From the NCBI GenBank assembly GCA_001643675.2, contig LSRY02000013.1, positions 1,116,001-1,180,000 of the forward strand: a stretch of DNA of 64,000 bases. Direction: 5' to 3'. A program made the position numbers and the translations under genes. Numbering within the stretch: the stretch's first letter is position 1; every line of letters starts with the position of its first letter. Below are positions 6,369-61,633 of this stretch, in pieces. Below the pieces are notes generated by a model, which saw nothing but the letters and a program-made list of their open reading frames with translations, was not told the origin of the DNA and ran no database searches. Source of the DNA: Monocercomonoides exilis PA203. Taxonomy: Eukaryota > Protista > Preaxostyla.

Positions 6369-7815
6369 TCAGACATTCACAAAATAATCAGAAATATTCA
6401 ACGATAATTCATTGAAACATTCACAACTGAAAATATTAATCATTTCATAAAAGCTTGCGATATCATCTTCGTATCCTTCTTCTTCCATCTTGTCGAATAT
6501 TCTTCTCTTCGTTTTCTTCCATTCTTCGCATTCGTCTCCCACAACCTCATTTTCTCTCACAGCAATTGAAAGCTTCGCAAAGAATATCAAGAATTCACAC
6601 ATCAGGCAATCATCAAATGTTTGATCGTGAATTTCCATCAAAACGAAATCAAAAACTCCGCTTTTCAGCAAATCATTGAAAACAATAAAAGTTGGCTGGT
6701 AAATTATCATTTTCACTAAAATGCCACAACATCGATAGACAACATTGATGTGATTCTCCCTTGCTGCTCTGCACAATCTTGTCATGCAACTGAGCAATTC
6801 AATATGCACTTCGTTACAAATCTCGAAACATTCAAAGAAAATTCCAATTATATCAAGCCATCTGTGCACAATTACAAAATCAATCATTTTCATTCTTCTT
6901 TCTGCATCTTTTTCTTTTCTCTTCCAGTCAACGCATCTTGTCAGCTCTTCCAGTTCTCTTGCTACCTCTCTCACATGACACAATCCATTCTCAACCACAC
7001 CTGTCAAATCGTTGCCCTTAATATATCTATGCATCAAAATGCTCCAAGCAGATTGATATGCAACATGTGTAAGATTGTGATGTTTCTGATGATATTTGAT
7101 AATTCCTTGAATCTTTTTCAAATACTTGTTTTTTTTGATCTCCTATTTAAAAGCAATGAAGGAAAAATCATTAATGTTAAAAAGCAAAGATGCTTGCATA
7201 CATTTCCTTCACACAAGCAACTCAAAGCAAGCAAAGCCATTTCCACTTCTTTTTGCGTTGTCTCGTCTCCCTTTTTCTTCAATGCAACTTTCAGAATGCA
7301 AGGCACACAAATAGAAAGCAATTTCTCGCTCAAGATATAACAACTGTGAAGCATTGCATGGCATTCACAAAGATCAACAAGAAGATTTTCATTATTTTTT
7401 TTATTTTTCTCATTTTTATCAATAATCATTTTCTCAAATCTTCTGCATAACAATGAACTACGAAAGGCAGAATTCCACAAGTTCAAAAGAACTTTGTAAT
7501 ATCCAACATGCTTCAGTAACACAATTGCATTTTCCATTGTAATTATCTTTTCTTCAATCATTTTGTCCACTTTATTGAACAGTTCTGTTGCTGAAATTGA
7601 TTCGAATCCTTTTTCATCCATTCTATCAATCGCTTCATTCATTTCTTCAATAATCTGTTTTTGCTCAATTTCTGTACAACGCTCCAGTTCATCAAGCAAT
7701 TCTTTAAAAGAAAAAGAAAGAAAAGAAAAAAAAATTTTCATTGAAGATTCAAGTTCAATAATGTGCGAAAACCTTGAAATTTTTCTGTGCATGCAACATC
7801 CTTCATGATTTTCAT
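6369..7815 (-). CDS. Lineage-specific helical-repeat (ARM-like) family protein, copy A; exons 7815-7773, 7701-7202, 7142-6369 (438 aa)
   Basis: Removing GT-AG introns 7772-7702 (71 nt) and 7201-7143 (59 nt) joins the ORFs in frame. Family motifs are KEVEMALLAL, HNLTHVAYQSAW and KMEEEGYED...SDYFVNV. It is paralogous to 40907-42318. Confidence 0.8.
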
Positions 7816-32800: not shown

Positions 32801-35800
32801 TCAATCAGATTTGTATCTTCTTTGTGTTCACAACTATCAAATCCATATATAGCATTTATTCGTGAATAATGATTCTCTCGAAGATCAAACTGGAATTGGC
32901 TTTCATTGATCTGAGATGTGATGTTGAAACATTCAATAAAAATATCATTTCCCACTCTAGCTGTGTTTGAACTGAATTTCATTCCCACAAATGAAAAATT
33001 CAATTCTCCTCTTTCCTTTGTTGCCAAATACACCCCTCCTCCTTTCCCATTGGTGCAGCTGCTTTGACTGGTTGTAGAGTCAATCATCTTCATTGATCCT
33101 GATGCACCCAATGTGAAAAATATCGCCCCTCCTTTTTCACTTGTTTCTGCTTTGCCTTCTGTGATGTTGCTCGCATTAACCACCAAACAAATCTTTTTCT
33201 CGCTCATTGATTGCAGAATGCTGGGTCCATTGTAACTTCTCTTCACTCCTGAAAATGATGATTTATCAATTTGAAGGTTTATCCCTCCTTTACTTCCTTC
33301 ATTTATCTTCAATCCTGGATCAGATTTCTTGATTGAAAAAATGCATCCTTTGCTTTCATTCAACGAATCCACTCGAACATTCACAAAATGGCAAGAAACT
33401 CCAGCATCGTGAATGACAAATATGTTGTTTCCAACATTGCATGATTCCATCGACAAATCATTCACTTCCACACTGCCTCCAATCACATCCACAAACACAC
33501 AATCAAATCCATTGTTCATTCCTGCTTCTGAATGGAAGGAACATCCAGTTATCGCCAATTCTCCATTTTTGTTTGAAATAATAGTTTTAGCTGAATTGTC
33601 AAATCCAGATGCCAGTTGAAGTCGGATATTTGTCAATTCAAGATGACCATCATTTTCCATGAAATATTCCAGTTGACTTCCGACTGCCTTTTCAAAATTC
33701 AAAGTTGCTTTTGTATCTTCTTCTCCCATCTTTACACCCTTTTTGATTAAATAATTGGATGCATTGAATGAATCTCGAATGAAAGTTGATCCTTCAATCT
33801 GAATTGTTTTCTTTCCTTCTCCATCGTTCATGTTTTCCATTCCTTTCCACATCGTGAAGCATGGCTCTTCTTCACTTCCACAACGCGCCACATCAAATCC
33901 TCCCGATGAGATAAATATCTCAGATGAGCTGAATGGAATCAGAAACATGAACAGATCTTTATTTGAATGAAAGTTATCACTTCCCATAAACAGAGTTTTA
34001 TCACTGATCATTGAGGAATAATCGAAGTTGAATGAGTCACTTGTCACACTTTCGTTCAAATCAGTTGTTGAAATGAACATGTTCTTTCCATATTCTGCTT
34101 TATTCTGATCAAATATCAAATTTCGTGATAAATTAAACTTTGCTTCTGCATATGCGAGAGAAAGGAATATCCCTCCTCCTTTCCCTTCACTTCCACTCGT
34201 TGAGGGTGCACAGCACTTTTCAAATCTTGTTGATGAGACACGCAATTCGGAAGGATTCTCCAACGAAACTGACAATCCTCCCCCTCTTTTCCCATTCCCA
34301 TTCACCTCACATATTAGGAATGTGCAATTCTCAACCCTAATTGTGTTCGTTCTGTCATCATTAGGACTCATCCAAAGGCATCCACCGTCTCCTGCTCCTC
34401 TCGTGATGTTCTCAAATGAGGTGTTCTTCAATGTGATAGATGAACACTTCTCAACATGAATCACTCCACAATTTGGCAGATCACAATTTGTGATCGAGCA
34501 ATTCTGTATTGTGACTGAGCTACTTGTAGCAATCTCAATCAATCCATTCACTCCATCTGTGTCTATTTGACTCGAAATCACCTCATCCATCATCCATTCA
34601 CAACTCCCATTCACAACAATCATGCACCCTCCAAATCTCACTTTTCCCACACTCCCTCCACAACTCATCCGAATAATCTCCACTTTCCCTCCACTCCCAC
34701 TCACAAACACATAATTCGCAGAATCCACTCCATTTCCCATCTTTATCCCACAATCAGCAAATCTCAATGTGCCACTCGAAGAATAAATAAATGATGATCG
34801 TTCCCCAATCGATCCTCCCAATTCAAACAATATCCCTGTCAATGTTGATGAAACACTGTTCATCACCAATGCTTCTTGTGTTTTTGTTCCTGTTCCTCCA
34901 ATTTTCAATCCAACATCTTTGTTGCTCGAATCAATCTCATATGATTGTTCATCCAACTGAACTTCTTCATCAAATGAAAATGTGCTTGTCAGTCTGATCA
35001 TTCTCTTTGAACTCGGAAACTGAACTTCTCCAACATTCCCAATTCCTCTGCATGGGTAATCTTCATATCCACACAATCTGAATTCACTTCCATTTCCTCT
35101 TCCACTCACATATGCTGGAGATGGAAATGTCCGAAGAAACACAACAAGTGGAACAACCAGCTCTGGATTGTTTCTTTCTCTTCCACAAAGTTCATTCAAG
35201 TCTGCAACATTTATTCCGATTTCTGGATTGAATCCAAATGAAGCGCTGTTGATAGCATCTGACAAATCCTGTGCTTCCACAAACAGATTCTTCCCTCCCA
35301 ATGTTGCAGCGCAATCATCAAAACTCACTGTTGTTATTGAAAAGTCATTTGAATTGTCAGCCAAACTCATCATCACCCCTCCTCCAAATCCACTGCAATT
35401 GCATCTGTTGAATTTTGTTGCTTCGCTTGTCGTGGATGATGCTCCAATTCGAGCTTTGCTTGTGGGCGATGATAAATCAATCTTGATCCCTCCGCTACTG
35501 CCATTCACACACTCGCAACCCTCGATTGTCACATTCTGAACCACAAATGTCTCTCCTGCCTTCACACTCTTTGCAACAACCACCCCATCTCCTCTCGTCA
35601 ACCTCACATTCTGAACCGTCACATTCGCAAGCACGCTATCTCCAGATGCAGTAGTTGTCATAAACAGTCCGGACGAGGAGGATGAAGAAGAAGATAGAAC
35701 CGGCTCAGAGAACAATGATTTTGAGACATTCATATTTATGATCTCCACATCAACCATCGACAGCTGTGACAGCGCCACCACAAACACCGACGACGACATC

Positions 35801-38076
35801 ACATAGTTTCCTGAAGAAACACTCGTGGTGATCACAACATCCTCCAACGAGAGTGACCCACTTCCATCAGACACCACAACCACACTCGGTGAACTTTCTG
35901 CTGTTGAGTTGCAGTCAACCTTCATGTGAAATAAACTAAGATGGCCTGTTGTTACACTGAACAGCACTCCAGTTGATGAAAGACATTTTGTTCCAATCGA
36001 ACTCTTATCTTTGCCTGTTCCAATGACTGAAATCTTCTGTGCTCCAATATCAATTGTTGACGTCTCGTTTTGATGATTCCCTTCCATCAGCGTGATTGAC
36101 AAGCTTATCTGCACCTCACACATCTCAAACGCCTTCTTCACTGTCAGACACGGATTTGATTCATTCATCCCACACAACTCAATATTATCATCTCCACCAA
36201 CAGAAACATAAATCGTCTTATCCTTCAGCCAATCCCTTTTTGATGTTTGGTCATATATCCAGGTACCTGATGGATTATACGCATAGCACATTCTCTTATC
36301 ATCTGTATTTGTCGTGTAGCATTCATAGAACGGGTTAATTGATGATAAATACAAATTATATGCATCTACAAAATAGGCATCATGCCCATATGGAGTGGAG
36401 GTTGTTCTGCATTTGCATTCATGGAAGAACAAATAATAACAATAAATTTTATCATTTGGTGCTGTTGCTCCATTTGGATGAAAATATAATCCTCCTCCAT
36501 ACCTCATTGCTGAACATGAGATAAACTGAATGCTCCTCATTTTTAACTGACTTGGAACAGTCACACAACTCATGCCTCCACCCCAATTGTTCGTTAGTGA
36601 ACATGAAATGAAGCTGCAGTCAAACACACGAGCACTTTCTCCTCCACTATTTTCAGTTGGAACGCATCCTGATCCAATCACTTGAATAGTATCTAATCGA
36701 AAGCCTCCTCCTGCATTATTTGCTTTGCAATTCTGGAATTCACATCCACTGATCCGAACACACGCAGAAATCGAAAAAACACACAGCCCCCCTCCAATCC
36801 ATGTTTCAGAGGAACAGGCACTGAATGAGTTGTTCTCAATCTCAACCAATTTGATATTTGCGCACATGACTCCTCCTCCAGCATAAAATGCCGCACATCC
36901 ATTAAAAGAACAGTGAGCGACCGATATTGTTCCATCCCCTTTGCTGTACATATAAATTGCTCCACCATTCGAAGAGCCATCGGCGTATGAGTCACTTTCT
37001 CCTGTTGTCCTCGATCCGTTCCACTCGCACCAAATAAATGAATTTGCTCCATTCTCTGTTGTATTCTGTCTCCCTGGAGTTAGCTTATGATCTGCATTTC
37101 CTTCACATTTAACATTTCTTGTTCGACAACATCCAATGAATGAAGTGTTTGAAGCTGTCAGAGAGGCATAGGGGTTGTTGAGAGAGGGAACAATTCCTCC
37201 ATCATATGCATCGCAAACAGAAGAAAATGAGCAGCTGCTCATTAAACAAGTGGTTTGGGTTGACATTGTGGTTGAAGACAAACATGCCTCATTTGCTGTT
37301 GAGATGTTGAAAAAAGTGAGTCTGGAGAGTGAAATAAGAGGGATAAATGATGATAAAAGGAATGGGGTAGAAGACACACAAAAAGATGAGAAATGAGAGG
37401 AACAAACTGAAACATGACATTTTTCAAAAAGATCTCCCTTGAATGATTTTGAAGAGAAGAGAGATAAGCTTTTCTGCAAGTGAGAATCCAAAGAGAATCG
37501 GAGAGATATGTTGGTGAACAGCCCATAACTTCCACTCAAACAAAATGGAGGCATTTTTCCTCCAATTTCTATAATACATCCACTCAGTTCAACGAAACAT
37601 CCTTTCACAACATCCAAGACACTTTGGCCATCATTTGGCACCAATCCCAGTGAGTGGAGTTTTATTGAAGAATTGCCAATCATCAAACACCCTTCAATCC
37701 AACTTTCTCCCTCAAATCTTTGTTTTTTCCAGATTTTTCGTTCATCATGCAGGTTTGTTCCTTTCATCATTTCATTGGGACTGATTTCTTGAACTTTTTG
37801 TTTTTCTTTATTTCCTTCTTTTCCTTCTCCATTCATCGCCTTTTTCAATTTCTCAGTTTTCATCGTTCCACCTTCTCTTCCATCACCGCTTGCTTCAAAT
37901 GTGATTTTATTGGAATATATGACTTCTTGAAAAGTGTCCAACCAAGCTCTTTCGAGTTTGTTAAGAATTCCATCTTTCTTCAATTCCTTCGTCAGATATG
38001 CTTCATCGTTTGTTGCTCCATTGCACATGCGTTGCACACATATTATCCAAACAAAGCAGCATATTCCTGACAACAT
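29899..38076 (-). CDS. Giant single-pass membrane protein R2: signal peptide, beta-helix/CGxxxxPC ectodomain, TM segment, C-terminal pseudokinase
   Basis: Open frame of about 2725 aa from ATG 38076 (MLSGICCFVWIICV) with four CG...PC modules. TM is FWLLIVIIMAFVLLLILIIAVISTI. The tail has LSPHIVLF, RWKAPELL, SFSIGMMLWECLTLQIPF and RPTL. Confidence 0.88.
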   Translation of the reverse strand: MLSGICCFVWIICVQRMCNGATNDEAYLTKELKKDGILNKLERAWLDTFQEVIYSNKITFEASGDGREGGTMKTEKLKKAMNGEGKEGNKEKQKVQEISPNEMMKGTNLHDERKIWKKQRFEGESWIEGCLMIGNSSIKLHSLGLVPNDGQSVLDVVKGCFVELSGCIIEIGGKMPPFCLSGSYGLFTNISLRFSLDSHLQKSLSLFSSKSFKGDLFEKCHVSVCSSHFSSFCVSSTPFLLSSFIPLISLSRLTFFNISTANEACLSSTTMSTQTTCLMSSCSFSSVCDAYDGGIVPSLNNPYASLTASNTSFIGCCRTRNVKCEGNADHKLTPGRQNTTENGANSFIWCEWNGSRTTGESDSYADGSSNGGAIYMYSKGDGTISVAHCSFNGCAAFYAGGGVMCANIKLVEIENNSFSACSSETWIGGGLCVFSISACVRISGCEFQNCKANNAGGGFRLDTIQVIGSGCVPTENSGGESARVFDCSFISCSLTNNWGGGMSCVTVPSQLKMRSIQFISCSAMRYGGGLYFHPNGATAPNDKIYCYYLFFHECKCRTTSTPYGHDAYFVDAYNLYLSSINPFYECYTTNTDDKRMCYAYNPSGTWIYDQTSKRDWLKDKTIYVSVGGDDNIELCGMNESNPCLTVKKAFEMCEVQISLSITLMEGNHQNETSTIDIGAQKISVIGTGKDKSSIGTKCLSSTGVLFSVTTGHLSLFHMKVDCNSTAESSPSVVVVSDGSGSLSLEDVVITTSVSSGNYVMSSSVFVVALSQLSMVDVEIINMNVSKSLFSEPVLSSSSSSSSGLFMTTTASGDSVLANVTVQNVRLTRGDGVVVAKSVKAGETFVVQNVTIEGCECVNGSSGGIKIDLSSPTSKARIGASSTTSEATKFNRCNCSGFGGGVMMSLADNSNDFSITTVSFDDCAATLGGKNLFVEAQDLSDAINSASFGFNPEIGINVADLNELCGRERNNPELVVPLVVFLRTFPSPAYVSGRGNGSEFRLCGYEDYPCRGIGNVGEVQFPSSKRMIRLTSTFSFDEEVQLDEQSYEIDSSNKDVGLKIGGTGTKTQEALVMNSVSSTLTGILFELGGSIGERSSFIYSSSGTLRFADCGIKMGNGVDSANYVFVSGSGGKVEIIRMSCGGSVGKVRFGGCMIVVNGSCEWMMDEVISSQIDTDGVNGLIEIATSSSVTIQNCSITNCDLPNCGVIHVEKCSSITLKNTSFENITRGAGDGGCLWMSPNDDRTNTIRVENCTFLICEVNGNGKRGGGLSVSLENPSELRVSSTRFEKCCAPSTSGSEGKGGGIFLSLAYAEAKFNLSRNLIFDQNKAEYGKNMFISTTDLNESVTSDSFNFDYSSMISDKTLFMGSDNFHSNKDLFMFLIPFSSSEIFISSGGFDVARCGSEEEPCFTMWKGMENMNDGEGKKTIQIEGSTFIRDSFNASNYLIKKGVKMGEEDTKATLNFEKAVGSQLEYFMENDGHLELTNIRLQLASGFDNSAKTIISNKNGELAITGCSFHSEAGMNNGFDCVFVDVIGGSVEVNDLSMESCNVGNNIFVIHDAGVSCHFVNVRVDSLNESKGCIFSIKKSDPGLKINEGSKGGINLQIDKSSFSGVKRSYNGPSILQSMSEKKICLVVNASNITEGKAETSEKGGAIFFTLGASGSMKMIDSTTSQSSCTNGKGGGVYLATKERGELNFSFVGMKFSSNTARVGNDIFIECFNITSQINESQFQFDLRENHYSRINAIYGFDSCEHKEDTNLIDFVTIHQSDTIVVSSVNGSNDRQCGTNTHPCASIEHGLIHLTSELISQILVVEESVIGREINLKEMSLSSKSRENCKIEVKSSIEKTKDALVTTTGTVSLVRVKFVFDSNFISSHESLISPEGGILEMMNCSFDSKQSDEDGNIEFAIIPFQLLSMEKGEFQLDGCAISNLVLHELALYLSSPLSSVIYLFEISNSTIKTSLIDINECGQLTIKDFKTENITVEGNEESLISCLSPKKTIQLTNCTMCGVSSKITKGKLIKVENCTDVKMDNCIFDGMTKERNEKNLNIEEEICRWEGSLVDIVKSSVFMKDIIFSNSAEGGITMSGGNFIIEAGNFSSNNPFVQKYPSLRRNIICSDSASLTISSLKGGDGVMPNSSLWILNDGCTLGGIAGERPSPFFIPKLEEASLIENGNNVSIKLKGALLLPCDLSFRLVYKTGDVELVETYQFEDDDFVSETEVLGTISSENISKIGEETEVSVMILFGKQLAATSPQILKNRSESKVNGDERIVEGVKERKSFWLLIVIIMAFVLLLILIIAVISTIRWRNAKNENKELREIVNDTVRKDPKLIEMTTMEMSPEEQWRRAEREAEKKNEERIKKRVYEKSLQHSESSEHLLSESGSTEYILGRDSEKIPEWMLEKVDEKEEEEIRKKTPSPSISSTSSTDTSDTESTFVRREDLCPTTSSMSNLVDAMACSSPHEKLIVDLRDSLFMLLHGRNKTKEMAIGTLQEREQTAAQILFWVANLALHSFDEMESPLQSLANLSPHIVLFSEHMVICIVMHSDLLSDDSDSSSISSSTIVTSFSDDDDDDDSLPSSAFEDEGIFKKECLRWKAPELLINKNMEASKESVSFSIGMMLWECLTLQIPFGDYEAEVAGQKIVNGERTDMAAVGGSSFCELIKLMVSEKQSARPTLSDLKREFIQKFPAGAVILTVSDAVTHQEGSREKSKEEQSESLDSSEIMFINS

Positions 38077-38899
38077 TGTCACCAGAACACACGAGAAATA
38101 TCCTTTTCAAATTTTCCAGAATTAATTTATTAATAATGGGGAGAATGATTTGAAAAAAGTAATTTTTTTTATTTCAATTAACAATGAGCATTTGCATATT
38201 AATGAGTTTTGAACAGTTTCAAAAAACATCAAAATTAGATCAAAAGCATAATGCCAAACTATTAATCCAATATATTTGATGCCTTGATATTTAAGTAATC
38301 ACAGGATGTTCAATGCTTGAACTCGGTTCAATTGTTGACGCAATTTTATTTGAAGCTTTTGAAGGAGTTATTGTATTTGAATCATGTGCATCAACTTAGA
38401 GAGAGAAGTTATTCGAAACATTCTTTTATCAAAGGAAATAATAAAGTTTGAATATCGAAAACTTTTGTGCTGCTTCAACGATAATATTTCATTTATGCTT
38501 GCCTGTATCGCATTTGTTTATTTATTCACAAAAATCAGAAGCTGTGGAGATATTTTGAAAGCGATGTAATTTTCTTTTGCCTCAGCCAAAATGAACATTC
38601 ATGAGCAAAGGAACGAACTGCATCGAAGAAGCTTATAGGAGTCTTCATCACTGTTTTTTAATATGAAATATTGAAATCCTTTGTGTGTTTTGGGGAATAT
38701 GAAATCCATTTTCATTCAAAGGAAAGTTTGTTTTTGCAAAACGTGCCTAGAATATAACTTTATCAAGGAGACGGTAAAATTGTCAAAGGGAAGAAACTGC
38801 AACATGTTTGTGATAAATTCTGCCTGAATTGAATGTTTTAAAGAAAAATTGAATTATTTGTTTTTGAGCCTTTTTTTTTTTTGAATTTTCGTATCTGTT

Positions 38900-46625: not shown

Positions 46626-47227
46626 ATATATCAAAGTGAAAATATATTGATTAATCAAAAACCAAATTCAAAATAAAACATTTTCTTCATCATTCCACTA
46701 TCGTCTCCTATTTCATTAACACTCAGAAATATTTTTCAAAACATAAGTGCGCACGTGATGTATTCCTTGAATCCCGTCAGATAAAACACAAATAGCTGTA
46801 CTGATTATGTAATGGAAATAAAACCACAAAAGCCGATAAAATGAAAAATATTCATTCAGAATAAAAAGTAATTCAATTTCAATATTGGTTGACCAGTCAA
46901 AATAATGCATTCAAATACATAATAAAACCCAAATAGTTTTCTGGACTGCTTTCAGGGTTCTATGGTGAATCATGATAAGTGTGAAAATGAACCTTTCCGC
47001 ATTAAAAATGAAAACTTGCAAATGCATTTCAATTCGATTTGAAATACATCGTCTCATTTTCATTCATCAAATATAGATTCTTCAATTACATGATGGATTT
47101 CAAAAACAATTTTCTAAAGAATCACTTCAATTTTATTATTGAACGATCATTCTGATCGTTTATATAATATTTATTGTTTTCATTGAATTTCTATTGCCGT
47201 TTATATTTTCCATTCTTACAGGGTGAA

Positions 47228-49380
47228 ATGAGCTGCAAAACTGAAGCAATAAGCGAAATAATTGAAAGCAACACTGACTCGCAAAACGAGAATAGTGATC
47301 TCTCTTTTAAGGACGAGGAAGGAAGAACAAAAGCAATGAGATGGATTTTTGAAAAAAAGACTGAACCACCAATAGAAATAAGACACGATATAACACTTGT
47401 CGATAGAGATGGAAAAACAATGGCCATGCATTGGATTCAATTTGTTCAAACAGACCTACCAGAATGGATGAGGCATGATATAAAACTAACAAATAATAAC
47501 GGATGGACAATGGCTATGATATGGATTTATCATGTCAAGACAGAACCACCCAAGTGGATGAGACACAACAATGAAGTTGCAGACAAAGAAGGACAGACAA
47601 TGGCCATGCATTGGATAGATAAAATAAAAACAGAACCACCAGAATGGATGAGACATGATATCACACTTGCCAATAGGAATGAATGGACAATGGGTATGAT
47701 GTGGATTGTGAATGTTAAAATAGAACCTCCGGAATGGATGAGGCATGAAATTACGTTAAAAGATAATTATGGAAGAACAATGGCAATGCTGTGGATAAGT
47801 CATGTGAAGACAGAACCACTAGAATGGATGAGACATGATATTACACTAAATGATAACTCGGGATGGACATTGGCCATGATGTGGATTTATTACTTAAGAA
47901 CTGAACCGCCTGAATGGATGAGGCATGATGTTACACTTTCTCAGAAGGATGGCTGGACTATGGCCATTCTGTGGGGCTTTTATTTAAAGGCAGAACCGCC
48001 TGAATGGATGAGGAATGACATAACACTTGCTGATGAGGATGGAAGGACAATGGCTATGAAGTGGATTGCATACTTAAAGACAGAACCTCCAAAGTGGATA
48101 CGACACGAAATAACACTTGGCTATAAAAAAGGGAAAACAATGGCAATGATATGGATTGCTTATATCAAGACAGAACCGCCAATGTGGACGAGGCATGAAA
48201 AAATTCTTAAAGATAAAAATGGCTGGACGATGGCCGTGTATTGGATTATTTTCAAGAGAACAGTTCCTCCGGAATGGATGAAGCATGACAACACACTTGT
48301 CGATAATAATGGAAGGACAATGGCGATGTTCTGGATTTATTTTATCAAGACAGAACCGCACTTTACCTGAGGCACGACTCTGCATTTTCGAATAAGGATG
48401 GTTATACAATGGCAATGATATGGATATTAGTTGTTAGAAGAGAACCCCCAGAATGGATGAGGCATGATGCTTCATTAGCTGACAAGAAAGGATGGACAAT
48501 GGCCATGAATTGGATTTATGAAGTCAAAACAGAGCCTCAGGAATGGATGAGGCATGACATAACACTAGGAAAAGGAGAAAGTGGAACAATGGCTATGATA
48601 TGGATTGATAGAGTGAAAACTGAACCACCGGAGTGGATGAGACACGATGCTCAGCTGGGTAACAAGGATGGAAGTACAATGGCCATGCTGTGGATTGTGG
48701 ATGTTGAAAAGGAGCCGCCAGAGTGGATGAGGCACGATATTAAACTTGCTGATAAAAAAGGAAACACAATGGCAATGATATGGATTGCTTATATCAAGAC
48801 AGAACCACCAGAATGGATGAGACATGACATCACACTTCGAAATTATTATGGATCAACAATGGCCATGCTGTGGATTCAAGAAATCCAAACAGACCCACCA
48901 AAATGGATGAGACATGATATCACACTTACCGATAAAGACGAAGACACAATGGCGATGTGGTGGATTCAGTTTGTCAAGAAAAATCCACCAGAATGGATGA
49001 GGCATGAAATCACACTTGGCGATAAGGAAGGGAAAACAATGGCAATGCTTTGGATTGCTTATATCAAGACAGAACCGCCAATGTGGATGAGGCACGACAT
49101 TACGCTTGGTGATAAGCATGGATGGACAATGGCCATGCATTGGATCGAAAAAGTGAAAACAGAACCACCAACTTGGATGAGACATGACATAACGCTTGCA
49201 AGCGGAAACGGATTGACCATGGCGATGTTCTGGATTGGAAACGTTGAAACAGAACCGCCTGAGTGGATGAGACACGACATTGAACTTAGAGATAAACATG
49301 GATTTGCAATGGCAATGTACTGGATTATATTCCATAAATGCCAACCACCGGAGTGGATGAAAATTGATTGGACAAAATAA
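47228..49380 (+). CDS. Tandem 30-aa repeat protein (23 repeats, ankyrin-like), with a single 1-nt frameshift near 48359; 717 aa if repaired
   Basis: Consensus DxxGxTMAMxWIxxVKTEPPEWMRHDITLx repeats every 90 nt from 47312. Adding one C in GAACCG[C]CA restores EPPLYLRHDSAFSNKDGYTMAM and fuses ORFs 47174-48370 and 48409-49380. A TTACAG acceptor at 47221 suggests an upstream intron. Confidence 0.85.
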
Positions 49381-50434
49381 TTGTGAGTAGCAAATTTTCC
49401 CAAATATTGAGAATTTTCTATTTTTAAAATGTATTTGCTTTTCAGTGTGTGTTGAAATTAAAGACTTTAACACGAGTTTACTGAAATGCATAGTGTTGAT
49501 TGATTTGGATAATTTTTTTTTCCTTTCTTTCTTTCTTGTTCTTTTCTTTTCTTTTCTTTTCTTTTTTCTTTTTCTTTTTTTTCTTTTTCTTTTTTCTTTT
49601 TTTTTTTTTTTTTTTTTTTTTTGGGAAAACTTTTATTATTTCGATTGAAATTTGAATATCTTTCAAAAAAAAACAGACATAAATGTTCCTCCGACGTTAT
49701 TTATTTGTTTATTTTGATGTTTTCTGAAAGAATTGTGTGAAATCAATCTATTGTTGATCTTTTTATTCGCGGAATCATTGGATGAGTCTGTTTTCTTTTT
49801 TATTGATAATTCCACAGGTATGAAATTGAGAGGTTCTTTTGAAGGATAATGTTAATTCGTTCATTTCCATTTTAATTTCCATTTCGCATCATTCTCTGGA
49901 ATTTCCTGATTTGGATTTTCTGACTTTTTAACTGTCTTTTATCAAAACTAATTTTCCTTGACAAATGTTTAATTTTATCTCTTTTTTCTTTCTCTTTTGT
50001 GAAAAAGTTTTTTTCCCTCTGAAATTGCTAAATGGTTTCCAACAGATTACAATAAGAAAATGGAAATAAATAAGATTTGAGGAAGAAAACGTTGTTGGAT
50101 TTCGAGAACAATATGGATACTCAAATGTCCAAAAATGAGTTTTGCTTGAGAATATGGTTTCAAACATGTAATGAGTTGGTTGTTTCGATTTTCATCAAAA
50201 AACAACTCTAGCGAAAAAATTGTTACTGAGATAAAATATTCATAATTATAGTTAACTGCTATTTTGTTTTGATGTGTGTTGCGTAAATGACTTTTCTCTT
50301 TTAATTTTTATTTAATTCAATTTTATTTAATTTTTCATTTCTGTCAATTGACAGAAAAATATTGCAAAATTAAAAAATAGCAAAAACCAAAAGAATTTTA
50401 GATGATGTCAATAGAGACAACTCAAAAGAGATGC

Positions 50435-50875
50435 AGAGAAGAAGAAGAAGAAGTAGAAGAAGAAGAAGAAGAAGAAATATCTTTCTCCATTCCAGAACGA
50501 ATATCGCTTGTTGTCTTGTTCACCTCGTTCTTGATCCATACATCTTCTTCCATCTTGTTCTCTTCTCCTTCTTTCATTCCACTCTCCATCTTCTTCTTCT
50601 TCTTCTTCTTCTTCTTCTTCTTCTTCTTCTTCTTCTTCTTCTTCTTCTTCTTCTTCTTCTTCTTCTTCTTCTTCTTCTCCCTCTTCTCCCTCTTCTTCTC
50701 CTTCTCCTCCTCCTCCTCCTCTTCTTCTTCTTCTTCTTCTTCTTCTCTTTTATCTTCCTCCAAAATCTTCTCTTCTCCAACCAAATTGTCTTTTCTTCAT
50801 TTTTCTCCTCTTTCTTCTTCCTCTTCTTCATCCTCCTCCTCCTCTTTCTCTAATTCTTCTTCTTATTCTTCTTTT
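50435..50875. repeat. (GAA)n/(TTC)n low-complexity tract, including a long pure (TTC)n run at about 50590-50676
   Basis: Seen directly. Confidence 0.9.
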
Positions 50876-53274: not shown

Positions 53275-54208
53275 TATGTTCTTTGACCAAGCAATAATAG
53301 TAATAAATTCAAAAGCATGAACATTCGCTTTTTCGGCCCCAAAGAATTTCAAAAAGGTCCCTCAAAATAAATAATATTCAATGGTTGTTTATCCAGCACT
53401 GAATCAAATAGGGGCTAAATGGATAAATGATTATAAATAATTATTCCACAAAACAGAAAAGAAAAATATATTTTTTAGCATTTTTGTTGTCTCTTCTTCT
53501 TTAAATACTTTTTTCTGTAGCCTACTGAAAGCAAAATCCATTTTCTTTATATTTGTTCGCAAAGCTCCATTGATAAAGTCTCATGGAAATTGCTTTCTGT
53601 CTCACTTCAAAATCCTTGAATATTGTTTCTCAACATAAGATATAATTATTTGACTCCTCATAAACTTCAATCATTTGTTCACAAGTTTTTCTCTTCAATT
53701 CATTCATTAAAAATTCGTATGGGTTAAAAAAGAATGTTTTCTTTGATGTTTAACACAAAAGATAATTAATTCATTGTAATTAGAAAAATCCATAAATGTT
53801 CTAATTTTACACACTTTTGAAGACCATGCATTTGAACGTTGTTTCAGACTTATCAAATAGATAGCAAAAATTTAATGCACAAAAATAATATGACAACAAT
53901 AAAATCAATAATTGTGTTCTTGAAAATGAATGAACAAAGTGCTGTATTTTGTCAATTTTTTCCATCATTTTCTGTAATACAGTTTATTTTCTACGAATTA
54001 AATTATTGATAATAATAACAAAACAAATGACTAAAAAATAACTGAATTTTATCTTTAATTTTTGTCGAAAACATATTAAATATAACTTATTTTTTCATAA
54101 AAATTTATTCAGTTTTCATTCATGTTTGTTTTTTCAAATGTATTTTATCATGATCATTTATATAATATGATGTTTGATAATCAAAATTGATTTTAATTCC
54201 GCTTGAGA

Positions 54209-57200
54209 ATGCTTTTGTTCATTTTTGCATGCTTGATTCTTGGAAAGACATTTGAAGCACAATATGTCTCTGGAAGTGCCACATTTCAAAGCAAAGGTAT
54301 TCTTTCGAATTGTAATTTTTTCAATAATTCTCTTTATTTGTGTTCAGGTTATTCAAATGATGCACAATATCTGTCAGAGACTGATGCCAATTACTTATCT
54401 GAGCGGAATGCATTGTTGGAAGTGAAAAGATTACAGTCAGGACTTTCTACAGTGAAAAACACATTTTTGGGATTGCACAATTCTACAGTTGGACTGAAAA
54501 ATGTGGCAATTGAACATTCTTCTTCAGCATGTGTGCTAATAACAGACAAGTCGAATTTGATGTTGGATTCCTGCATTTCCCACCGAAAATCGGAATCACC
54601 GTTTCTTTTGCAAAGCGGGGCAATCTGTTTCACAAATATGAGTTTGATCCCCCAAAAGAATTTAAACCCTTCCAGCCTCATATTTTCATCTGATGATTCA
54701 AATATTGCTGTTTTGAGAAATTCCATCGTTGCAGATCTGACCGTTTCATCATCAGACTATTTCCTGCTGTCTGGAAAGAGCAAAATGGAACAGATTCATG
54801 ATTGTGTCTTCAAGAACATGTCAGTGAAATTAGACAATAACAGTGATTATCAAATGGCGCATTCATGTTTGTTGAGTTTAATGGAGAACTGCCTCATTTA
54901 TTCTTCTGTTAATGTATTTGAAGGAGGGATTTCAAGTGGATCATATTCTTCAGCGGAATTTAACTGCAAAAACACAACAATACGCAACGGAAAAAGAGAA
55001 GCAAATACTTTGAAGAAAAAAGTGCATATTGATTCAACAGCAAATAAATCCTTTTCTTTATGTGAATGGATTGATTGCATAGCCGAACAAGGAGGTGCAC
55101 TTTATGTTCATGACAATGAAAAAGCCATCCTTCGAGTTGAAAATTCGTCATTTACAAGATGTAATGCTTCATCCACAAGAGGAGGAGGAATTTATGCTTT
55201 GAAAATCGCTGAATGCATTGTGCTTCATTCATCATTTTCTCAATGCACATGTGCTTCATTAAAAGGAGATGGTGGAGGAGGAGGAATTAGGGTGGAGAAT
55301 GTGTATGTGCAATCAATGGTCGACGATTGCACCTTTCGAAATTGCTCATCCGGCAACGATGGAGGGGCAATGGATATTCGTCCCACAAATACAAAAAGGC
55401 AGAAAGAATGCATCATCAATTCATTGTTTGATAATTGTCGAAGCAATCACTCAACTAACGGGATCGGAGGCGCGATAGAACATTTTTTCGCAACAGATAA
55501 AGTTGTTTTTTCAAATTGCAAATTCTGTAACTGTTATTCAATGAATGGAGCTGGTGCTGTATATCAACAAATTAATTCAAATAATAATGGAACATTGTTT
55601 TATTTCTGCTTTTTTCACAATAATTCATGTATGAAAGGAGGTCATGATATTGTCCTTCAAGATTCAACATCAAACAACATTGATTCGACCTGCTATTCAA
55701 CAAGGAATACAACAAATAGAGTTAGCACAGATACATATGCAGTGATTGATAAAAGTGAATGGCTTCGAAACGATTTTGGAATAATGAGATTTGTTTCTTC
55801 GACTGAAACACAACCTTATGCAACTGACACATATGCGTGTGGACTGAATGAAATTCATCCTTGTGGAACTCTCAGGCATTGCTTGACTCAGCTTATTCCT
55901 GATATTGCCACAGATATTGAGATACTCACAGGAACGATAACAGAAACCAAGAAAGTGGATTGTGGAATTAACACTTTCACAATATATGGCCAAAGTGATT
56001 TGAGTTCAACAGTTCAAATAGAATTTGAAGCATCTGGGTTGTCTCTTTTTTCTGTATCAGCGGGAACATTGACTGCCAGGGACTTTGTTCTTGTGCATGA
56101 CTCGGTTCATCTGAATAACCGTGGGTCAAGGCTGTTTGAGATTACAGGAGCAGGAGAGATGCATATAAGTGGACTGAACATATCTTTTGGGAGCGGACAA
56201 TCTTCAGAAACAGCGTTCACCACTGAGCTGATAAATGTTCAGAGTGGGATGTTGAAGATGGAAAATGTGAACTGTGCAAAGACTATCTCCACTGTTTCGT
56301 TGTTTTCGCTTTCTTCAACAAATGAGATCTCATTGACACTTTCAGAGTGCACTTTTATTGGGATTGAAAGAACAACCAGCGGAGCAGCTGTGATTTCGTT
56401 TTCCAACGATAAGGCAAATATTGATCTGAATTCGAGCACTTTTGAAGGATGTGGATGCAGAACATCAACTGATGGAGGATCGATAATGCTGTGTGTTGGG
56501 AATGGAAATGAAGTTAAAGTGAAAGGTGGATCTTTTGATGGGTGCTATTGCTCTGCAACATATGGATTTGGGGGAGGAATCCTTCTTCGATTATTGAATG
56601 AAAATCCCGATTTCCTGATTTCCTCTTCATTCGGAACAAACACAGCCAAGTGGGGAAGCGATATCTTCGTCTTATCACAAAATCTGGAAGTGATCGTAAA
56701 TCCTCAAAAGATCTCTTGTGTTTCAGCCTCTTTGGACTCTGTTGACAAAGTGAGAGGATATGACAATGGAAATACGAGTGTAGCAATCCCACTGTGCATC
56801 TATCTCCTTCCCACCCCAGAAGAAATATATGTGAGCAATTCTGAGGCATCTGACCATTCTCATTGTGGAATAGTCCAATTTCCCTGTTTGACAATGAAGC
56901 ACTCCCTCACAAGGCAAACAGGAACAAAGAAAGTTGTTGTGAATGGAATGGTTGCGATGAGTGATGAATTGGACTTTATTGATCAAAAGCATGAAATCAA
57001 AGGAAATGATGATCAGAGTGGTTGGACAGTCTCTGATTCAAGTTCAACATCCAATTCATCTATGATTTCAGCAAATGTTGAAACAGTCTTATCAACACTT
57101 ATCTTTTCTCTTCCTTCTTCTTTTTCATCACACTCCATTTTCATTTCTTCTTCTTCACAACTGTCTTTATCTCATTGTTCTTTGATTCTTCAAAATTCTT

Positions 57201-60200
57201 TATCAGAATTGACATTTCTGTTTTTATCCGTTGAGTCTGAAACCTTGTATATTGATTCGTTTTCTGCTTCATCGATTGATTTGAGTGGAAGTCCATTGAT
57301 CTCGTTGTCTGGAAGTGGAACAAGTACAGAGTCAATGAGTACCAAATGGTTGAACATGACGAACAGCATTTTTTCAGAAATTGAAAGAGCAGCTGGAAGT
57401 GGAGGCTGTGTAAGCATTGATAATAGCAACGATGAAAATAGGAACACACAAATAAATATTGAAAAATGCGATTTTGATGGATGCTCTGTGCTGAATGATG
57501 AAAGCAGAGGAGGGGCAATCAATGCTCAGCTGAAAGGGAATACTCAATTGAACATTATTTCATGCACATTCACAGAATGCACAGCACCAACTGGAGAAGA
57601 AGAAAAGACGGGCTTTGGTGGAGGGATGGCACTGAAGTTGATTGATGACTATTCTTCATTTATGATCTCATCACCCATTTTTGAGGCAGACAAGCCAAAT
57701 GTTGCGAGATATGGAAATGATCTTTTCGTTGAAGCATTGAACTTGACAAAGAGTATCACAAACACCTCACTTCCATTTGTATCAGAGAATCTGTCTGATA
57801 TTTCATTAAATTCCATGAGAGGCTTTGATGGGATTGACACAACGAATGCCATCCCGCTGGTGTATTTCTGGCGAACATTTGGCTCAGAGATATTTATTGA
57901 AAGAGATGGAAAAGACGTGTGCATTTGTGGACTTTCAGATTATCCTTGTCTTTCAATTGATTATTCTTTAAATCGATTGCCTGAAGGAAATGAAAGGAAA
58001 ATAACCATCATTGGAAAAGGAATTCTTCAGAAATGTGTTGATCTCAGTGGAATCTCAATAAGCTCAAATAATATAGATATGTGCTCTTTGGAATGTTATT
58101 CATCACTTGGAGGAACAGATGAAGCTGTAATGAAGATTTCTGGGACCACAAATTTCGAACTAATTGACTTTGCGATCCCAACATCATTCGAAAATCGTAT
58201 GAACGTTTTGATGCATGTTGGCTCAAGCGAGGGATTGTTGACTGTGAAGGACTGTTCATTCACTAAAATGGAAGAAAGTGTGAAAGACATTATTAATTAT
58301 GGGCTGATCAAAGCAGATGGAGGAACTGTTCAATTGGAGTTTGCGACAATGCAATCATTCAGTTTTGCAAAAGATGTTATTTGTGTTTTGCCAACAACGA
58401 TTCTATATGTGAAAAATCTGACAATGAAGAATGTTTATCTGAATGGAGCAAGCGGATTGAGGATATCAAAGAGTTCAGGGAGAGAGAAAAATGAAGAAGA
58501 ACAAGATGTTCTTATTGAGTGGAGTTCATTCGAAGAAGTCACCCAGAACACGACAGATGATATTCCCATCATTCGAAATACCAATGATGAGCCTTTGAAA
58601 ATGGTGATTCGAAACACAACGATGAAAAGATGTGGAGGGTTGAAGTGTGGCAAGGGAGGAGGGATGTTTTGTGGGTTGAATGAGGGAGGAAGCTTCGACT
58701 GCTCATTTTGCACGATTTCTGAGAGCTTCTGCTCTACCACAGGAAGAGGCGTGTGGATGTTTCTGGAGTGTTCCTCAGTGGCTGAGAAGCCTCTGAACTT
58801 TGTGTTGTCAAATATCACATTCAGAGACAACTCTGCGTTCAGAGGGGGAGATGTGTATATGAGATGCCACTCAATCGAAACACAAATAGTTGAAGAACAG
58901 TTCTTGCTGGATTTCAGAGCACCTTTTGTGAAGGAGCTTGCAATGTGGGGCTGCACAACAGATTCGTTTATTGGGGAAGAAGATCTATTGCTGAGGGTTA
59001 TGAGATACCAGAGCGAGACAATATTCGTGTCTTCTGTTGCAGACAATCACACAGATAGCAAGCAATGTGGAGAGTTCAATGCCCCATGTCAGTCAATGGA
59101 TGTTGGGGTGCAACACATCATTCCTTCATCTTATTCTCAACTGCTAATCGCAAAGGGGACGATCGTCAATGGAGAATGCAGTGCACATAATGTCAGCATA
59201 CACTCGCTGGAATCTCCCTCAGCTGCTTCAGTTCATCTGAACTCAACAATAACAGGCGAGGGAAGTCTTATCACAACTTCAGAGAAAGTTCGGATCGAAA
59301 GTGTTAAGTTTTTCTTTGGCAAGTCGTTTTCATATTCTGGAAGTTCTATTATCCATGAAGCAAGTGGTCAGCTTTCTCTTTCAATTGTTGATTTTTCTTC
59401 TGTTGTGGAGTCAAACAGCATTCCATCTGTTGCTCTCAACTCGTCATTATTGAGCATTGCAAATGGAATTCTTCATGTTGACAACTGCTCACTATCACTC
59501 CTTTCATTCAAGGAGCCTTCGCTTCTGTGCAATGGAGATGAGATCAATATCACAAATTTCAAACTAGAACAAATTGAATCAATAACAGATATATTTGTGA
59601 TTGGGCAGTGCAAAGAAGTTGCATTTAATTGGGTTGTGGCTGATGAAGTGGAGCTGTCTGAAGGCTGCATCATTGCGATTCATGGTTCAAATTCAGGAAC
59701 AACTTCGATTGGAATCTCCTCATTCAACAACTGCTCAAGGAATTCAGGAGGTCCTTCTGTTCTCTCTGTTTCTTCAACTTCTGCTCAAAAAACACTTTCA
59801 AACTGCACTTGCACGAATTGTGTTTCATTGTCTGAAAAAGGAAGTGTTGTGGAGGTGAGCAATGCAACGAATGTTTTGATGGATTTATGTCGATTTATTG
59901 GAGTTCTTGAGAAAGAAAAGGAAAGTGACAGAATTAATTCTTTTGAAGAAATATGCAAATGGAATGGATCACTTGTTCACTTAGCGAATTCTTCATTGGT
60001 GCTGAAGGATGTGACAATATCGAATTCTTCATCAGGTGGAATAACAATTAGCGGAGGAAATTTTATAATTGAAGCCGGGAATTTCTCAAGCAATAATCCT
60101 TTTGTTCAGAAATATCCCTCTCTTCGTAGAAATATCATTTGCTCAGATTCTGCTTCACTGACCATTTCCAGTTTGAAAGGAGGAGATGGAGTGAAAGATA

Positions 60201-61633
60201 ACTCATCGCTTTGGATTCTGAATGATGAATGCACCCTGGGTGGAATATCAGGAGAAAGGCAATCTCCTTTCTTCATTCCAAAGCTCGAAGAGGCATCTCT
60301 CATTGAAAACGGAAACAATGTTTCAATAAAACTCAAGGGAGCACTTCTTCTTCCTTGTGATTTGTCATTCATGCTGATGTATAAAACAGGAGATGTGGAG
60401 TTGGTTGAGGCACATCAGTTTGAAGAAGATGGTTTTGTTTCAGAAACGGAAGTGCTTGGGACAATCTCATCAGAAAATATTTCAAAGATTGGAGAAGAAA
60501 CAGAGGTTTCTGTGATGATTCTGTTTGGAAAACAATTGGAATCCACTTCTCCACAGATACTGAAGAACAGAAGTGATTCCAAGGTGAATGGAGATGAAAG
60601 GATTTCTGAGGGAGGAAAAGAAGAGAAATCAACATGGAATTTGATTGTGATTGTTGTGATGGGTGTGCTGTTTGTGATATTCATGTTTATATTTGCTGCA
60701 GTTGTTGTGCTTTTGCGAAAGAAACTGAAGGAAATGGAAAAGAAAGTTGAGAAAGAGAGATTGGAAAATGAGGAGATAATGGGGAAGCTTGAGAGGAGAA
60801 GAAGGGAAAACAATGGAGGGAGCTTTGAGATGAGTGACATGCCATCAACATTGCTGGAAGGGATGACGAGTCAAATACCTCTGTTGATCGACAACGACGA
60901 AGAAGATGGGATGGAAGCAGGAGGAATGAGAGATGAGGAGCCGAATGAAAATGATGTTTCATATTCAGAATCTCCATTACCATTTTCTGAGAATGCTTCT
61001 GCTTCTGGAATACCACAATCACATTCATTCAACGTGATATCAGCGAAGAATCCATTTCGAGAGAAGGAGAAAAAGAACATCAAAACATTGTATTCGGCGA
61101 TTCATTCCGTTCAAGGTAATTTCACCATGGGAACAAGAGCGATGGATGTTGTTGATGGGAAGAAGGTGGTTTTGGCAGTTGCAGAGCTGTTTGAGCATTT
61201 GATTTCAGTTGGAGACGAAAGGGTGGAAATGATGGCAAGACAGCTGTGCCCATATGCAATCTTTGTTGAGGAAGGAAATGAAAATGAAATCTACCTATTG
61301 TCAGAGGAATTAGAGGAAGAGAAACAGAAAGAGGAAATGAAGCGATGGAAGGCACCTGAAGCGGGAGATGAAGAAGAGGGAATTGAAAAGGCAGTTGTTT
61401 TCACACTTGGACTGATTCTGCATGAGATGACAACCGGGGAAGTGCCTTTGAGTGAATGCAATGCAGAAGAAGCGCAGGAGATGATGAGGGATGGGGTGCG
61501 ACCGCTGACAGAAGGAATCGAAGGAACAGAAATGGTTGAGGTGATGGAGAAGATGTGGACAGATGAGCCAAATGACAGACCCAGTTTGGTGGAAGTGATA
61601 AGTTCATTTGACGGAACTATTGAGGTACTTTGA
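54209..61633 (+). CDS. Giant single-pass membrane protein R3: signal peptide, beta-helix/CGxxxxPC ectodomain, TM segment, C-terminal pseudokinase
   Basis: Open frame of about 2474 aa from ATG 54209 (MLLFIFACLILG) with four CG...PC modules. TM is LIVIVVMGVLFVIFMFIFAAVVVLL. The RWKAPE tail is nearly identical to that of R1. Confidence 0.88.
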   Translation: MLLFIFACLILGKTFEAQYVSGSATFQSKGILSNCNFFNNSLYLCSGYSNDAQYLSETDANYLSERNALLEVKRLQSGLSTVKNTFLGLHNSTVGLKNVAIEHSSSACVLITDKSNLMLDSCISHRKSESPFLLQSGAICFTNMSLIPQKNLNPSSLIFSSDDSNIAVLRNSIVADLTVSSSDYFLLSGKSKMEQIHDCVFKNMSVKLDNNSDYQMAHSCLLSLMENCLIYSSVNVFEGGISSGSYSSAEFNCKNTTIRNGKREANTLKKKVHIDSTANKSFSLCEWIDCIAEQGGALYVHDNEKAILRVENSSFTRCNASSTRGGGIYALKIAECIVLHSSFSQCTCASLKGDGGGGGIRVENVYVQSMVDDCTFRNCSSGNDGGAMDIRPTNTKRQKECIINSLFDNCRSNHSTNGIGGAIEHFFATDKVVFSNCKFCNCYSMNGAGAVYQQINSNNNGTLFYFCFFHNNSCMKGGHDIVLQDSTSNNIDSTCYSTRNTTNRVSTDTYAVIDKSEWLRNDFGIMRFVSSTETQPYATDTYACGLNEIHPCGTLRHCLTQLIPDIATDIEILTGTITETKKVDCGINTFTIYGQSDLSSTVQIEFEASGLSLFSVSAGTLTARDFVLVHDSVHLNNRGSRLFEITGAGEMHISGLNISFGSGQSSETAFTTELINVQSGMLKMENVNCAKTISTVSLFSLSSTNEISLTLSECTFIGIERTTSGAAVISFSNDKANIDLNSSTFEGCGCRTSTDGGSIMLCVGNGNEVKVKGGSFDGCYCSATYGFGGGILLRLLNENPDFLISSSFGTNTAKWGSDIFVLSQNLEVIVNPQKISCVSASLDSVDKVRGYDNGNTSVAIPLCIYLLPTPEEIYVSNSEASDHSHCGIVQFPCLTMKHSLTRQTGTKKVVVNGMVAMSDELDFIDQKHEIKGNDDQSGWTVSDSSSTSNSSMISANVETVLSTLIFSLPSSFSSHSIFISSSSQLSLSHCSLILQNSLSELTFLFLSVESETLYIDSFSASSIDLSGSPLISLSGSGTSTESMSTKWLNMTNSIFSEIERAAGSGGCVSIDNSNDENRNTQINIEKCDFDGCSVLNDESRGGAINAQLKGNTQLNIISCTFTECTAPTGEEEKTGFGGGMALKLIDDYSSFMISSPIFEADKPNVARYGNDLFVEALNLTKSITNTSLPFVSENLSDISLNSMRGFDGIDTTNAIPLVYFWRTFGSEIFIERDGKDVCICGLSDYPCLSIDYSLNRLPEGNERKITIIGKGILQKCVDLSGISISSNNIDMCSLECYSSLGGTDEAVMKISGTTNFELIDFAIPTSFENRMNVLMHVGSSEGLLTVKDCSFTKMEESVKDIINYGLIKADGGTVQLEFATMQSFSFAKDVICVLPTTILYVKNLTMKNVYLNGASGLRISKSSGREKNEEEQDVLIEWSSFEEVTQNTTDDIPIIRNTNDEPLKMVIRNTTMKRCGGLKCGKGGGMFCGLNEGGSFDCSFCTISESFCSTTGRGVWMFLECSSVAEKPLNFVLSNITFRDNSAFRGGDVYMRCHSIETQIVEEQFLLDFRAPFVKELAMWGCTTDSFIGEEDLLLRVMRYQSETIFVSSVADNHTDSKQCGEFNAPCQSMDVGVQHIIPSSYSQLLIAKGTIVNGECSAHNVSIHSLESPSAASVHLNSTITGEGSLITTSEKVRIESVKFFFGKSFSYSGSSIIHEASGQLSLSIVDFSSVVESNSIPSVALNSSLLSIANGILHVDNCSLSLLSFKEPSLLCNGDEINITNFKLEQIESITDIFVIGQCKEVAFNWVVADEVELSEGCIIAIHGSNSGTTSIGISSFNNCSRNSGGPSVLSVSSTSAQKTLSNCTCTNCVSLSEKGSVVEVSNATNVLMDLCRFIGVLEKEKESDRINSFEEICKWNGSLVHLANSSLVLKDVTISNSSSGGITISGGNFIIEAGNFSSNNPFVQKYPSLRRNIICSDSASLTISSLKGGDGVKDNSSLWILNDECTLGGISGERQSPFFIPKLEEASLIENGNNVSIKLKGALLLPCDLSFMLMYKTGDVELVEAHQFEEDGFVSETEVLGTISSENISKIGEETEVSVMILFGKQLESTSPQILKNRSDSKVNGDERISEGGKEEKSTWNLIVIVVMGVLFVIFMFIFAAVVVLLRKKLKEMEKKVEKERLENEEIMGKLERRRRENNGGSFEMSDMPSTLLEGMTSQIPLLIDNDEEDGMEAGGMRDEEPNENDVSYSESPLPFSENASASGIPQSHSFNVISAKNPFREKEKKNIKTLYSAIHSVQGNFTMGTRAMDVVDGKKVVLAVAELFEHLISVGDERVEMMARQLCPYAIFVEEGNENEIYLLSEELEEEKQKEEMKRWKAPEAGDEEEGIEKAVVFTLGLILHEMTTGEVPLSECNAEEAQEMMRDGVRPLTEGIEGTEMVEVMEKMWTDEPNDRPSLVEVISSFDGTIEVL

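Follow-up and report, generated by a model that had tools for sequence, protein, structure and literature searches.

A broken repeat gene of Monocercomonoides exilis as a probable member of a large lineage expansion of divergent 30-residue ankyrin-type repeats

In this study, we revisited a tandem-repeat gene at positions 47228–49380 of a 64,000-nucleotide (nt) stretch of the genome of Monocercomonoides exilis PA203 (contig LSRY02000013.1, positions 1,116,001–1,180,000 of the forward strand), which is referred to here as the window and in which all positions given without a contig name are counted. An earlier note on this DNA had described the gene as encoding one natural protein resembling the designed ankyrin repeat proteins (DARPins), with an almost fixed framework and a set of variable positions, or slots, and had proposed it as a candidate programmable recognition or defence protein. 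We conclude that the locus belongs, with good probability, to a divergent ankyrin-type repeat of 30 residues that has undergone a large lineage expansion, and that the copy in the window is broken. The interest of this finding lies in the family, given its size, its possible viral relatives and the failure of standard domain models to detect it, whereas the broken window copy alone is of little interest.

The repeat array itself is clear. Using Tandem Repeats Finder, a 90-nt period was detected at 47417–49317 (21.1 copies, score 627), and in-frame parsing divides 47312–49380 into 23 units of 90 nt or 30 amino acids, the last of which has 29 amino acids followed by the stop codon TAA (49378–49380). 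The array and the consensus described previously were reproduced by this parsing, and all 23 residue pairs at positions 13 and 14 are the same as those in the earlier note's list. In the window gene, the scaffold positions T6, M7, A8, M9, W11, I12, P19, P20, W22, M23, R24 and H25 have an entropy (H) below 1 bit, while the slots at positions 2, 3, 5, 10, 13, 14 and 30 have an entropy of 2.0–3.3 bits. The same seven positions have the highest entropy among 930 units taken from 32 paralogous open reading frames (ORFs), where they rank in the order 5, 13, 14, 30, 10, 3 and 2, and Tyr, Trp, Arg and Lys are frequent in the slots. When the units of the window gene are compared among themselves, their DNA is 67 % identical and their protein sequence is 87 % identical at the scaffold and 14 % identical at the slots; since the scaffold is so much better conserved than the DNA, we take this to reflect conservation at the protein level and not a recent amplification. 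The protein is almost all repeat and has neither a signal peptide nor a transmembrane segment, as had been stated before; this agrees with the domain layout and with the hydropathy profile, in which no hydrophobic segment was found in the window-gene product (the highest Kyte–Doolittle mean over 19 residues is 1.04). Proteins of the family contain 7–8 % Trp and 8–10 % Met, and the net charge of the products of the two ORFs at the window locus is negative, about −5 and −8.

It is well supported by structure modelling that the 30-residue unit is a divergent, shortened ankyrin-type repeat, and sequence homology detected with hhalign agrees with this. AlphaFold2 was run on units 13–23 with an alignment of 17 paralogous segments, and the resulting model has a predicted local distance difference test score (pLDDT) of 93.8 and a predicted template-modelling score (pTM) of 0.85. 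Each modelled unit consists of one helix at positions 7–15 and a 3-residue turn at positions 21–23. The leading matches found with Foldseek in the PDB are all ankyrin proteins or DARPins, with an expectation value (E) of 5e-10 for 4rlv, the 24-repeat domain of ankyrin-B. In an alignment with this domain using VIA-align (Z score 19.8), 317 of 329 residues were aligned to 356, with one family unit per ankyrin repeat. A shape search of the ESM Atlas returned ankyrin clusters only (template-modelling scores 0.64–0.80), and the best viral structure match was the mimivirus ankyrin protein L93 (E 8e-16). A language-model search for look-alikes gave a weak ankyrin lead only (0.76).

On the sequence level, and without recourse to the model, hhalign matched the family alignment to the canonical ankyrin protein P0090 with a probability of 97.8 % (E 1.3e-12), and the family profile matches the same protein at E 8e-19. 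In the hhalign register, family positions 1–23 correspond to ankyrin positions 1–23 and family positions 24–30 to ankyrin positions 27–33, with a gap of three residues in the outer-helix region of each unit, which falls after M23 in most units. The slots then correspond to ankyrin positions 2, 3, 5, 10, 13, 14 and 33, and these include the six positions randomised in DARPin libraries, in line with the earlier claim. P0007, a relative on a eukaryote-like contig, matches both the family profile (E 6.5e-58) and the Pfam model Ank_2 (29.8 bits against a cut-off of 27.3). The proposal of a shortened ankyrin-derived solenoid has therefore held up, as AlphaFold2, the structure searches and hhalign all point to ankyrin; so has the proposal that the outer helix is cut to a short segment, in line with the 3-residue gap and the single Pro-Pro-x-Trp-Met turn.

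According to the model that we propose, each unit would form a loop (positions 26–30 and 1–5), an inner helix (positions 7–15) and a single turn at Pro-Pro-x-Trp-Met, which may be a remnant of the ankyrin outer helix that is three residues shorter. In the predicted ankyrin-like solenoid, each unit would stack on the next, with a family-specific N-cap and a family-specific C-cap at the ends, and the near-invariant Thr, Met, Ala, Trp, Ile, Pro, Arg and His residues would form its core. Based on helix periodicity, residues 10, 13 and 14 would share a face of the helix from which M7, W11 and V15 point away, and by homology with ankyrin repeats the seven free slots would constitute a putative ligand-binding groove. 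It is most likely, from this homology, that the intact paralogues act in the cytosol as scaffolds or adaptors that bind proteins through a wide variety of surfaces.

The copy in the window does not encode the one intact 23-unit protein that had been described, because a 1-nt deletion in unit 12 had been read through silently. The stretch 47228–49380 is 2153 nt long, which is no multiple of 3, and unit 12 is one base short (89 nt). The loss follows codon 19 of this unit, which ends at 48358, and the first frame (frame A) meets a TGA codon at 48368–48370. The array goes on in a second frame, which is open from 48361, and unit 12 reads L-Y-L instead of the usual E-W-M. The lesion lies outside any homopolymer, and six substitutions cluster with it in a stretch of nine bases; neither the window nor the loci that were fetched contain a nearby template for the odd 11-mer at this site. 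The site is spanned without difference by two Logan contigs from DNA runs of the same sample, one of 2022 (X1, 48159–48597) and one of 2016 (X3, 48210–48403), and a contig from an RNA library (X5, 48312–48597) carries the identical lesion, again without difference to the genome. Since two DNA runs and an RNA-library contig agree at 48359, the lesion is real in the strain and not an assembly error. The M. exilis PA203 assembly is Nanopore-based (PMC8767320) and the frame downstream of the lesion is fully open and well conserved, both of which would fit an error of assembly or polishing in an otherwise intact gene; however, with the agreement of these contigs across 48359, the absence of a homopolymer and the six clustered substitutions, such an error is very improbable. 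An intron that would restore the frame was also considered and rejected, as no GT..AG pair with a credible intron length is available and the RNA-library contig runs colinearly along the genomic sequence. Mismatch-free RNA-library contigs cover 47888–48166 and 48577–48773 as well, while the flanks have no RNA depth, and this suggests low-level transcription of the locus. The window copy is best read as a recent pseudogene or a split gene: the deletion would leave at most a 380-residue N-terminal product without a C-cap, and a restart at the Met codon at 48409 would yield a 323-residue product without an N-cap.

The window gene is one of many in this organism. In the assembly that was searched (82,301,135 bases in 101 contigs), at least 211 places match the second half of the window gene. 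A DNA pattern for the motif PPEWMRHD occurs 758 times, versus 0 times for a reversed control, and the exact motif is present in 32 % of the 930 sampled units; by extrapolation from these two values, the genome would therefore hold about 2,400 units, amounting to about 214 kb and roughly 80 genes. About 0.26 % of the genome is taken up by the family. Among its distinct open frames, of which at least 65 were recognized, the 32 that were examined are all-repeat, 305–1661 amino acids long and contain up to 55 units; those that include the ends begin with a short leader of hydrophilic character and are bounded by N-cap and C-cap units of distinct type, both of which are also present in the window gene. 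No other domain, including RING, was found in these 32 frames. At least 26 ORFs of the family cluster on contig C80, between 12 kb and 1.05 Mb in its first half, and the window copy stands alone, with a giant kinase-tailed ORF on either side; among 31 fetched loci no close paralogue of it was found, the best having 73 % DNA identity. The family is not mentioned in the genome papers searched, nor was it found by a full-text literature search with the genus name and 'ankyrin'.

Some further features of family members were noted. A conserved tail of about 50 amino acids, acidic and then basic and with no Pfam match, follows the C-cap at L008, L027, L030, L033, L035 and L038. A Met-Gly-Asn/Ser start, which is myristoylation-like, is present at L019, L002, L031, L026, L028, L029 and L032. 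Outside C80, roughly one third of the loci lie within 100 kb of a contig end by a hand count over contigs of known length; the contigs concerned are C10, C18, C30, C48, C1, C7 and C2.

Several observations weigh against our conclusion. The Pfam ankyrin models (Ank, Ank_2 to Ank_5) match neither ORF of the window gene at E values up to 1, and no other Pfam family matches the window ORFs either. There was also no Pfam ankyrin match at E values up to 0.1, only sub-threshold noise, in an intact paralogue of 1660 amino acids and 55 units. When run against PDB sequences, the family profile finds no ankyrin. Furthermore, the structure is a prediction made from an alignment of paralogous segments, and the placement of the slots on one face, which we infer, is drawn from the homology register and the helix periodicity. 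As to the window copy, the downstream frame is not only fully open but as well conserved as the upstream part, and the locus may be a functional two-ORF arrangement; in addition, contaminating DNA may be the source of the RNA-library contigs. The PDB sequence matches that were obtained with the protein and the family profile as queries, namely a designed tetratricopeptide repeat (TPR) protein (E 0.09) and titin (E 0.3–0.5), were not considered meaningful.

How the slots evolve was addressed with coarse Nei–Gojobori counts of the proportions of non-synonymous (pN) and synonymous (pS) differences among paralogous units, not with a site model on orthologues, and all ratios given here are to be read as such counts. 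In a first sample of 266 units, pN/pS was 0.12 for the scaffold, with a pS of 0.57, and 0.78 for the slots; overall, scaffold values among units were 0.07–0.12, with a pS of 0.57–0.73. For 157 independent close pairs drawn from the 930 units, pN/pS was 0.68 for the slots (bootstrap 0.57–0.82) and 0.07 for the scaffold, and for the 47 closest pairs (at least 93 % identity) the slot value was 0.55. The scaffold is under strong purifying selection, and the slots are weakly constrained, with no excess of amino-acid change. The diversification by selection that had been suspected is thus not supported by the slot values, and the dN/dS comparison called for in the earlier note turned up no excess of non-synonymous change, an outcome which that note had itself listed as counting against its reading.

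Two loci are informative about how arrays change. In the locus L029 (C13:943000–952000, minus strand, 3008–7538), a block of four units (360 nt) is present at least eight times in near-identical form, and the array is split over two overlapping frames, which makes this a second broken member of the family. The loci L010 and L012 (C80, about 100.5–104.3 kb and 90.0–93.8 kb) are inverted duplicates that are identical over more than 2.5 kb and have only ten differences, all of them in 23 nt that cover codons 8–16 of one unit. This single case resembles a short patch of gene conversion by which the variable face of the helix was exchanged. We propose that arrays may grow and change by tandem duplication of blocks of units and apparently also by short conversion patches.

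Relatives are also found outside this genome. An exhaustive profile search over 1.84 billion representatives gave 245 matches at E values up to 0.001, 145 of them at E values up to 1e-10; a word-indexed protein search, limited by its length window, returned no more than two metagenomic relatives. Many of the metagenomic relatives end in a C-terminal RING finger. The contigs of these often RING-bearing relatives (L013–L016, from JGI and ENA) are compact, with co-oriented genes of which almost none has a Pfam match, and other relatives lie on eukaryote-like contigs. In their gene layout, the compact metagenomic contigs are reminiscent of large DNA viruses, and among the viral fold matches are RING and U-box proteins from viruses of the Klosneuvirus group. 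In the M. exilis genome the fusion of the repeat with RING was not found; the five matches to RING in it are RING proteins of the ordinary kind, and family repeats are absent from the four RING-matching ORFs that were examined. One of the relatives, P0015, has 3932 amino acids (L039, 10001–21799, on a 76-kb ENA contig), and ten stretches of it match the family profile; its contig has fragmentary eukaryote-like genes, and the locus is not an exact translation of P0015.

Different functional readings can be set against that of protein-binding scaffolds or adaptors. We consider it unlikely that the family has a structural or cytoskeletal role, in which solenoids of up to 55 units would serve as spacers, springs or scaffolds, with slots that vary simply through being exposed and unconstrained. 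A slot pN/pS of about 0.7 fits such a weak constraint, the arrays are very long and vary in length, long arrays such as those of ankyrin-B and NOMPC are the best structural matches, and the ankyrin-repeat '21.1' proteins of the metamonad Giardia are associated with the cytoskeleton; however, about 80 paralogues with different surfaces exceed what a purely structural function would need. Less probable again is a hypervariable intracellular repertoire for recognition or defence, that is, a natural binder library whose slots are kept diverse by selection. It would be in keeping with slots that fall, by register, on the ligand face of ankyrin, with their many Tyr, Trp, Arg and Lys residues, with the size of the family, its dense cluster on C80 and its many loci near contig ends, and with the one conversion-like patch, which swaps exactly the variable helix face between otherwise identical copies. 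However, slot pN/pS never exceeds 1, either in the 157 pairs or in the closest 47, some arrays are near-identical 4-unit blocks without slot diversification, and no signalling or effector domain was found in the 32 paralogous frames; the programmable or defence role put forward earlier has no support here. A related idea, which we regard as a long shot, is that the roughly 80 genes encode intracellular binders whose ligand faces are reshuffled by conversion patches and whose arrays have grown by block duplication. If true, this would be a natural cassette-exchange binder library directed against prey bacteria, symbionts or viruses, and akin to the RING-linked, giant-virus-like versions.

The RING-bearing relatives raise another reading, namely that the repeats are substrate-recognition parts of a ubiquitin-ligase system that was possibly exchanged with large DNA viruses. 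The RING finger that ends many metagenomic relatives, the compact contigs with co-oriented genes mostly without Pfam matches, and the Klosneuvirus-group RING and U-box proteins among the viral fold matches all speak for it. Against this, the repeat–RING fusion is missing from the M. exilis genome as searched, none of the 32 paralogous frames has a RING finger, and the viral origin of the metagenomic contigs is putative, so that we give this idea only a slim chance. It is hardly credible that the proteins are readers of nucleic acids like the transcription activator-like effectors (TALEs), with residues 13 and 14 specifying a base. The resemblance, a variable di-residue in a fixed repeat, is a formal one; the two residues do co-vary, but shared ancestry of unit types explains this too. 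With 85 distinct pairs in 266 units, of which the top five account for 34 %, there is no small code, and the likeness to a TALE code remarked on in the earlier note is not supported. In addition, all fold matches are ankyrin and none is TALE or pentatricopeptide repeat (PPR), and the negative net charge of the two ORF products speaks against this role as well.

The layout of the window gene, all of it on the plus strand, is as follows. ORF A runs from the Met codon at 47228 to the TGA at 48368–48370 (47228–48370, 380 amino acids) and comprises a leader, the N-cap unit, units 2–11, codons 1–19 of unit 12 and four out-of-frame codons. The leader (47228–47311) is 28 amino acids long, hydrophilic and without a signal peptide. 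Upstream of the Met codon, an acceptor-like pyrimidine tract with CAG ends at 47221, and depending on whether this putative acceptor is used, the true start may be at 47228, or else an upstream exon may exist. Unit 1 (47312–47401) is of the N-cap type, with the pattern GRT.AMRWI..KKTEPP and an atypical IEIRHD end, and is followed by the ten intact 90-nt units 2–11 (47402–48301). The lesion unit, unit 12, occupies 48302–48390, with an orphan CA at 48359–48360. In the second frame, the ten intact units 13–22 (48391–49290) are followed by unit 23 (49291–49380), which is of the C-cap type, ends in PPEWMK.D and consists of 29 amino acids and the TAA. ORF B (48409–49380, 323 amino acids) starts at the first Met of the second frame, which is M7 of unit 13, and its exact product is recorded in the ESM Atlas. 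Antisense ORFs of 67–212 amino acids inside the array (window 47191–49491, minus strand, for example 48853–49491) are by-products of the repeat periodicity and not genes. Just downstream of the gene are a long T-rich tract (49513–49622) and a TCT-rich tract (50543–50746), and the long 'ORFs' on both strands at these tracts are low-complexity artefacts. The flanking ORFs, at 29899–38082 on the minus strand (2727 amino acids) and at 54203–61633 on the plus strand (2476 amino acids), each end in a partial tyrosine-kinase-like domain; according to the genome paper, their kinase-tailed family is the largest in the organism.

The family described here defines a subfamily of divergent ankyrin repeats that standard domain models miss, with a 30-residue unit, a single full helix followed by a Pro-Pro-Trp turn, and a core rich in Met and Trp. 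For genome annotation, this means that dozens of 'hypothetical' all-repeat genes gain a named fold, and a natural consensus for a thinner scaffold of the ankyrin type becomes available to protein design. It also flags a fast-changing gene family in the biology of a model amitochondriate eukaryote.

Among known systems, TALE repeats share with the family a fixed repeat with a variable di-residue; however, they have another fold, a unit of 33–35 amino acids and a small residue code, and no such code was found in the family. Ankyrin–RING E3 ligases differ in that RING and U-box domains are absent from the window gene and from the 32 paralogous frames examined. The ankyrin families of giant viruses and poxviruses, such as mimivirus L93, are likewise large and paralogous, and some of their members are fused to RING or U-box domains, as are the metagenomic relatives of our family; identity to them is only 10–18 %, however, and the M. 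exilis members are chromosomal and without RING.

The original DARPin library is said to have been designed with positions 2, 3, 5, 13, 14 and 33 randomised. Both DARPins and the family have a near-identical framework with an N-cap and a C-cap unit, and the variability of the family lies at positions that would correspond to the DARPin paratope surface. This paratope is formed by surface variable positions (PMC8683736). In contrast to DARPins, the family is natural and far longer, with up to 55 units, has a shortened unit and shows no sign of selection for diversity in its slots. The comparison to DARPins made in the earlier note stands as far as the positions of the slots are concerned, but it does not single the family out, since the coincidence of slots and ligand face is a general property of ankyrin families and not a special DARPin-like trait.

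The closest comparison is with the ankyrin repeat itself, as in ankyrin-B (4rlv). The family unit is 30 and not 33 residues long, has a Pro-Pro-x-Trp-Met turn in place of the outer helix, T-M-A-M for TPLH and Trp-Ile for Ala-Ala, and the Pfam ankyrin models are blind to it. What the two have in common is the one-on-one stacking of units, the Asp-x-x-Gly-x-Thr start, the inner helix, the loop rich in Asp and Asn, and the variable positions 2, 3, 5, 10, 13, 14 and 33.

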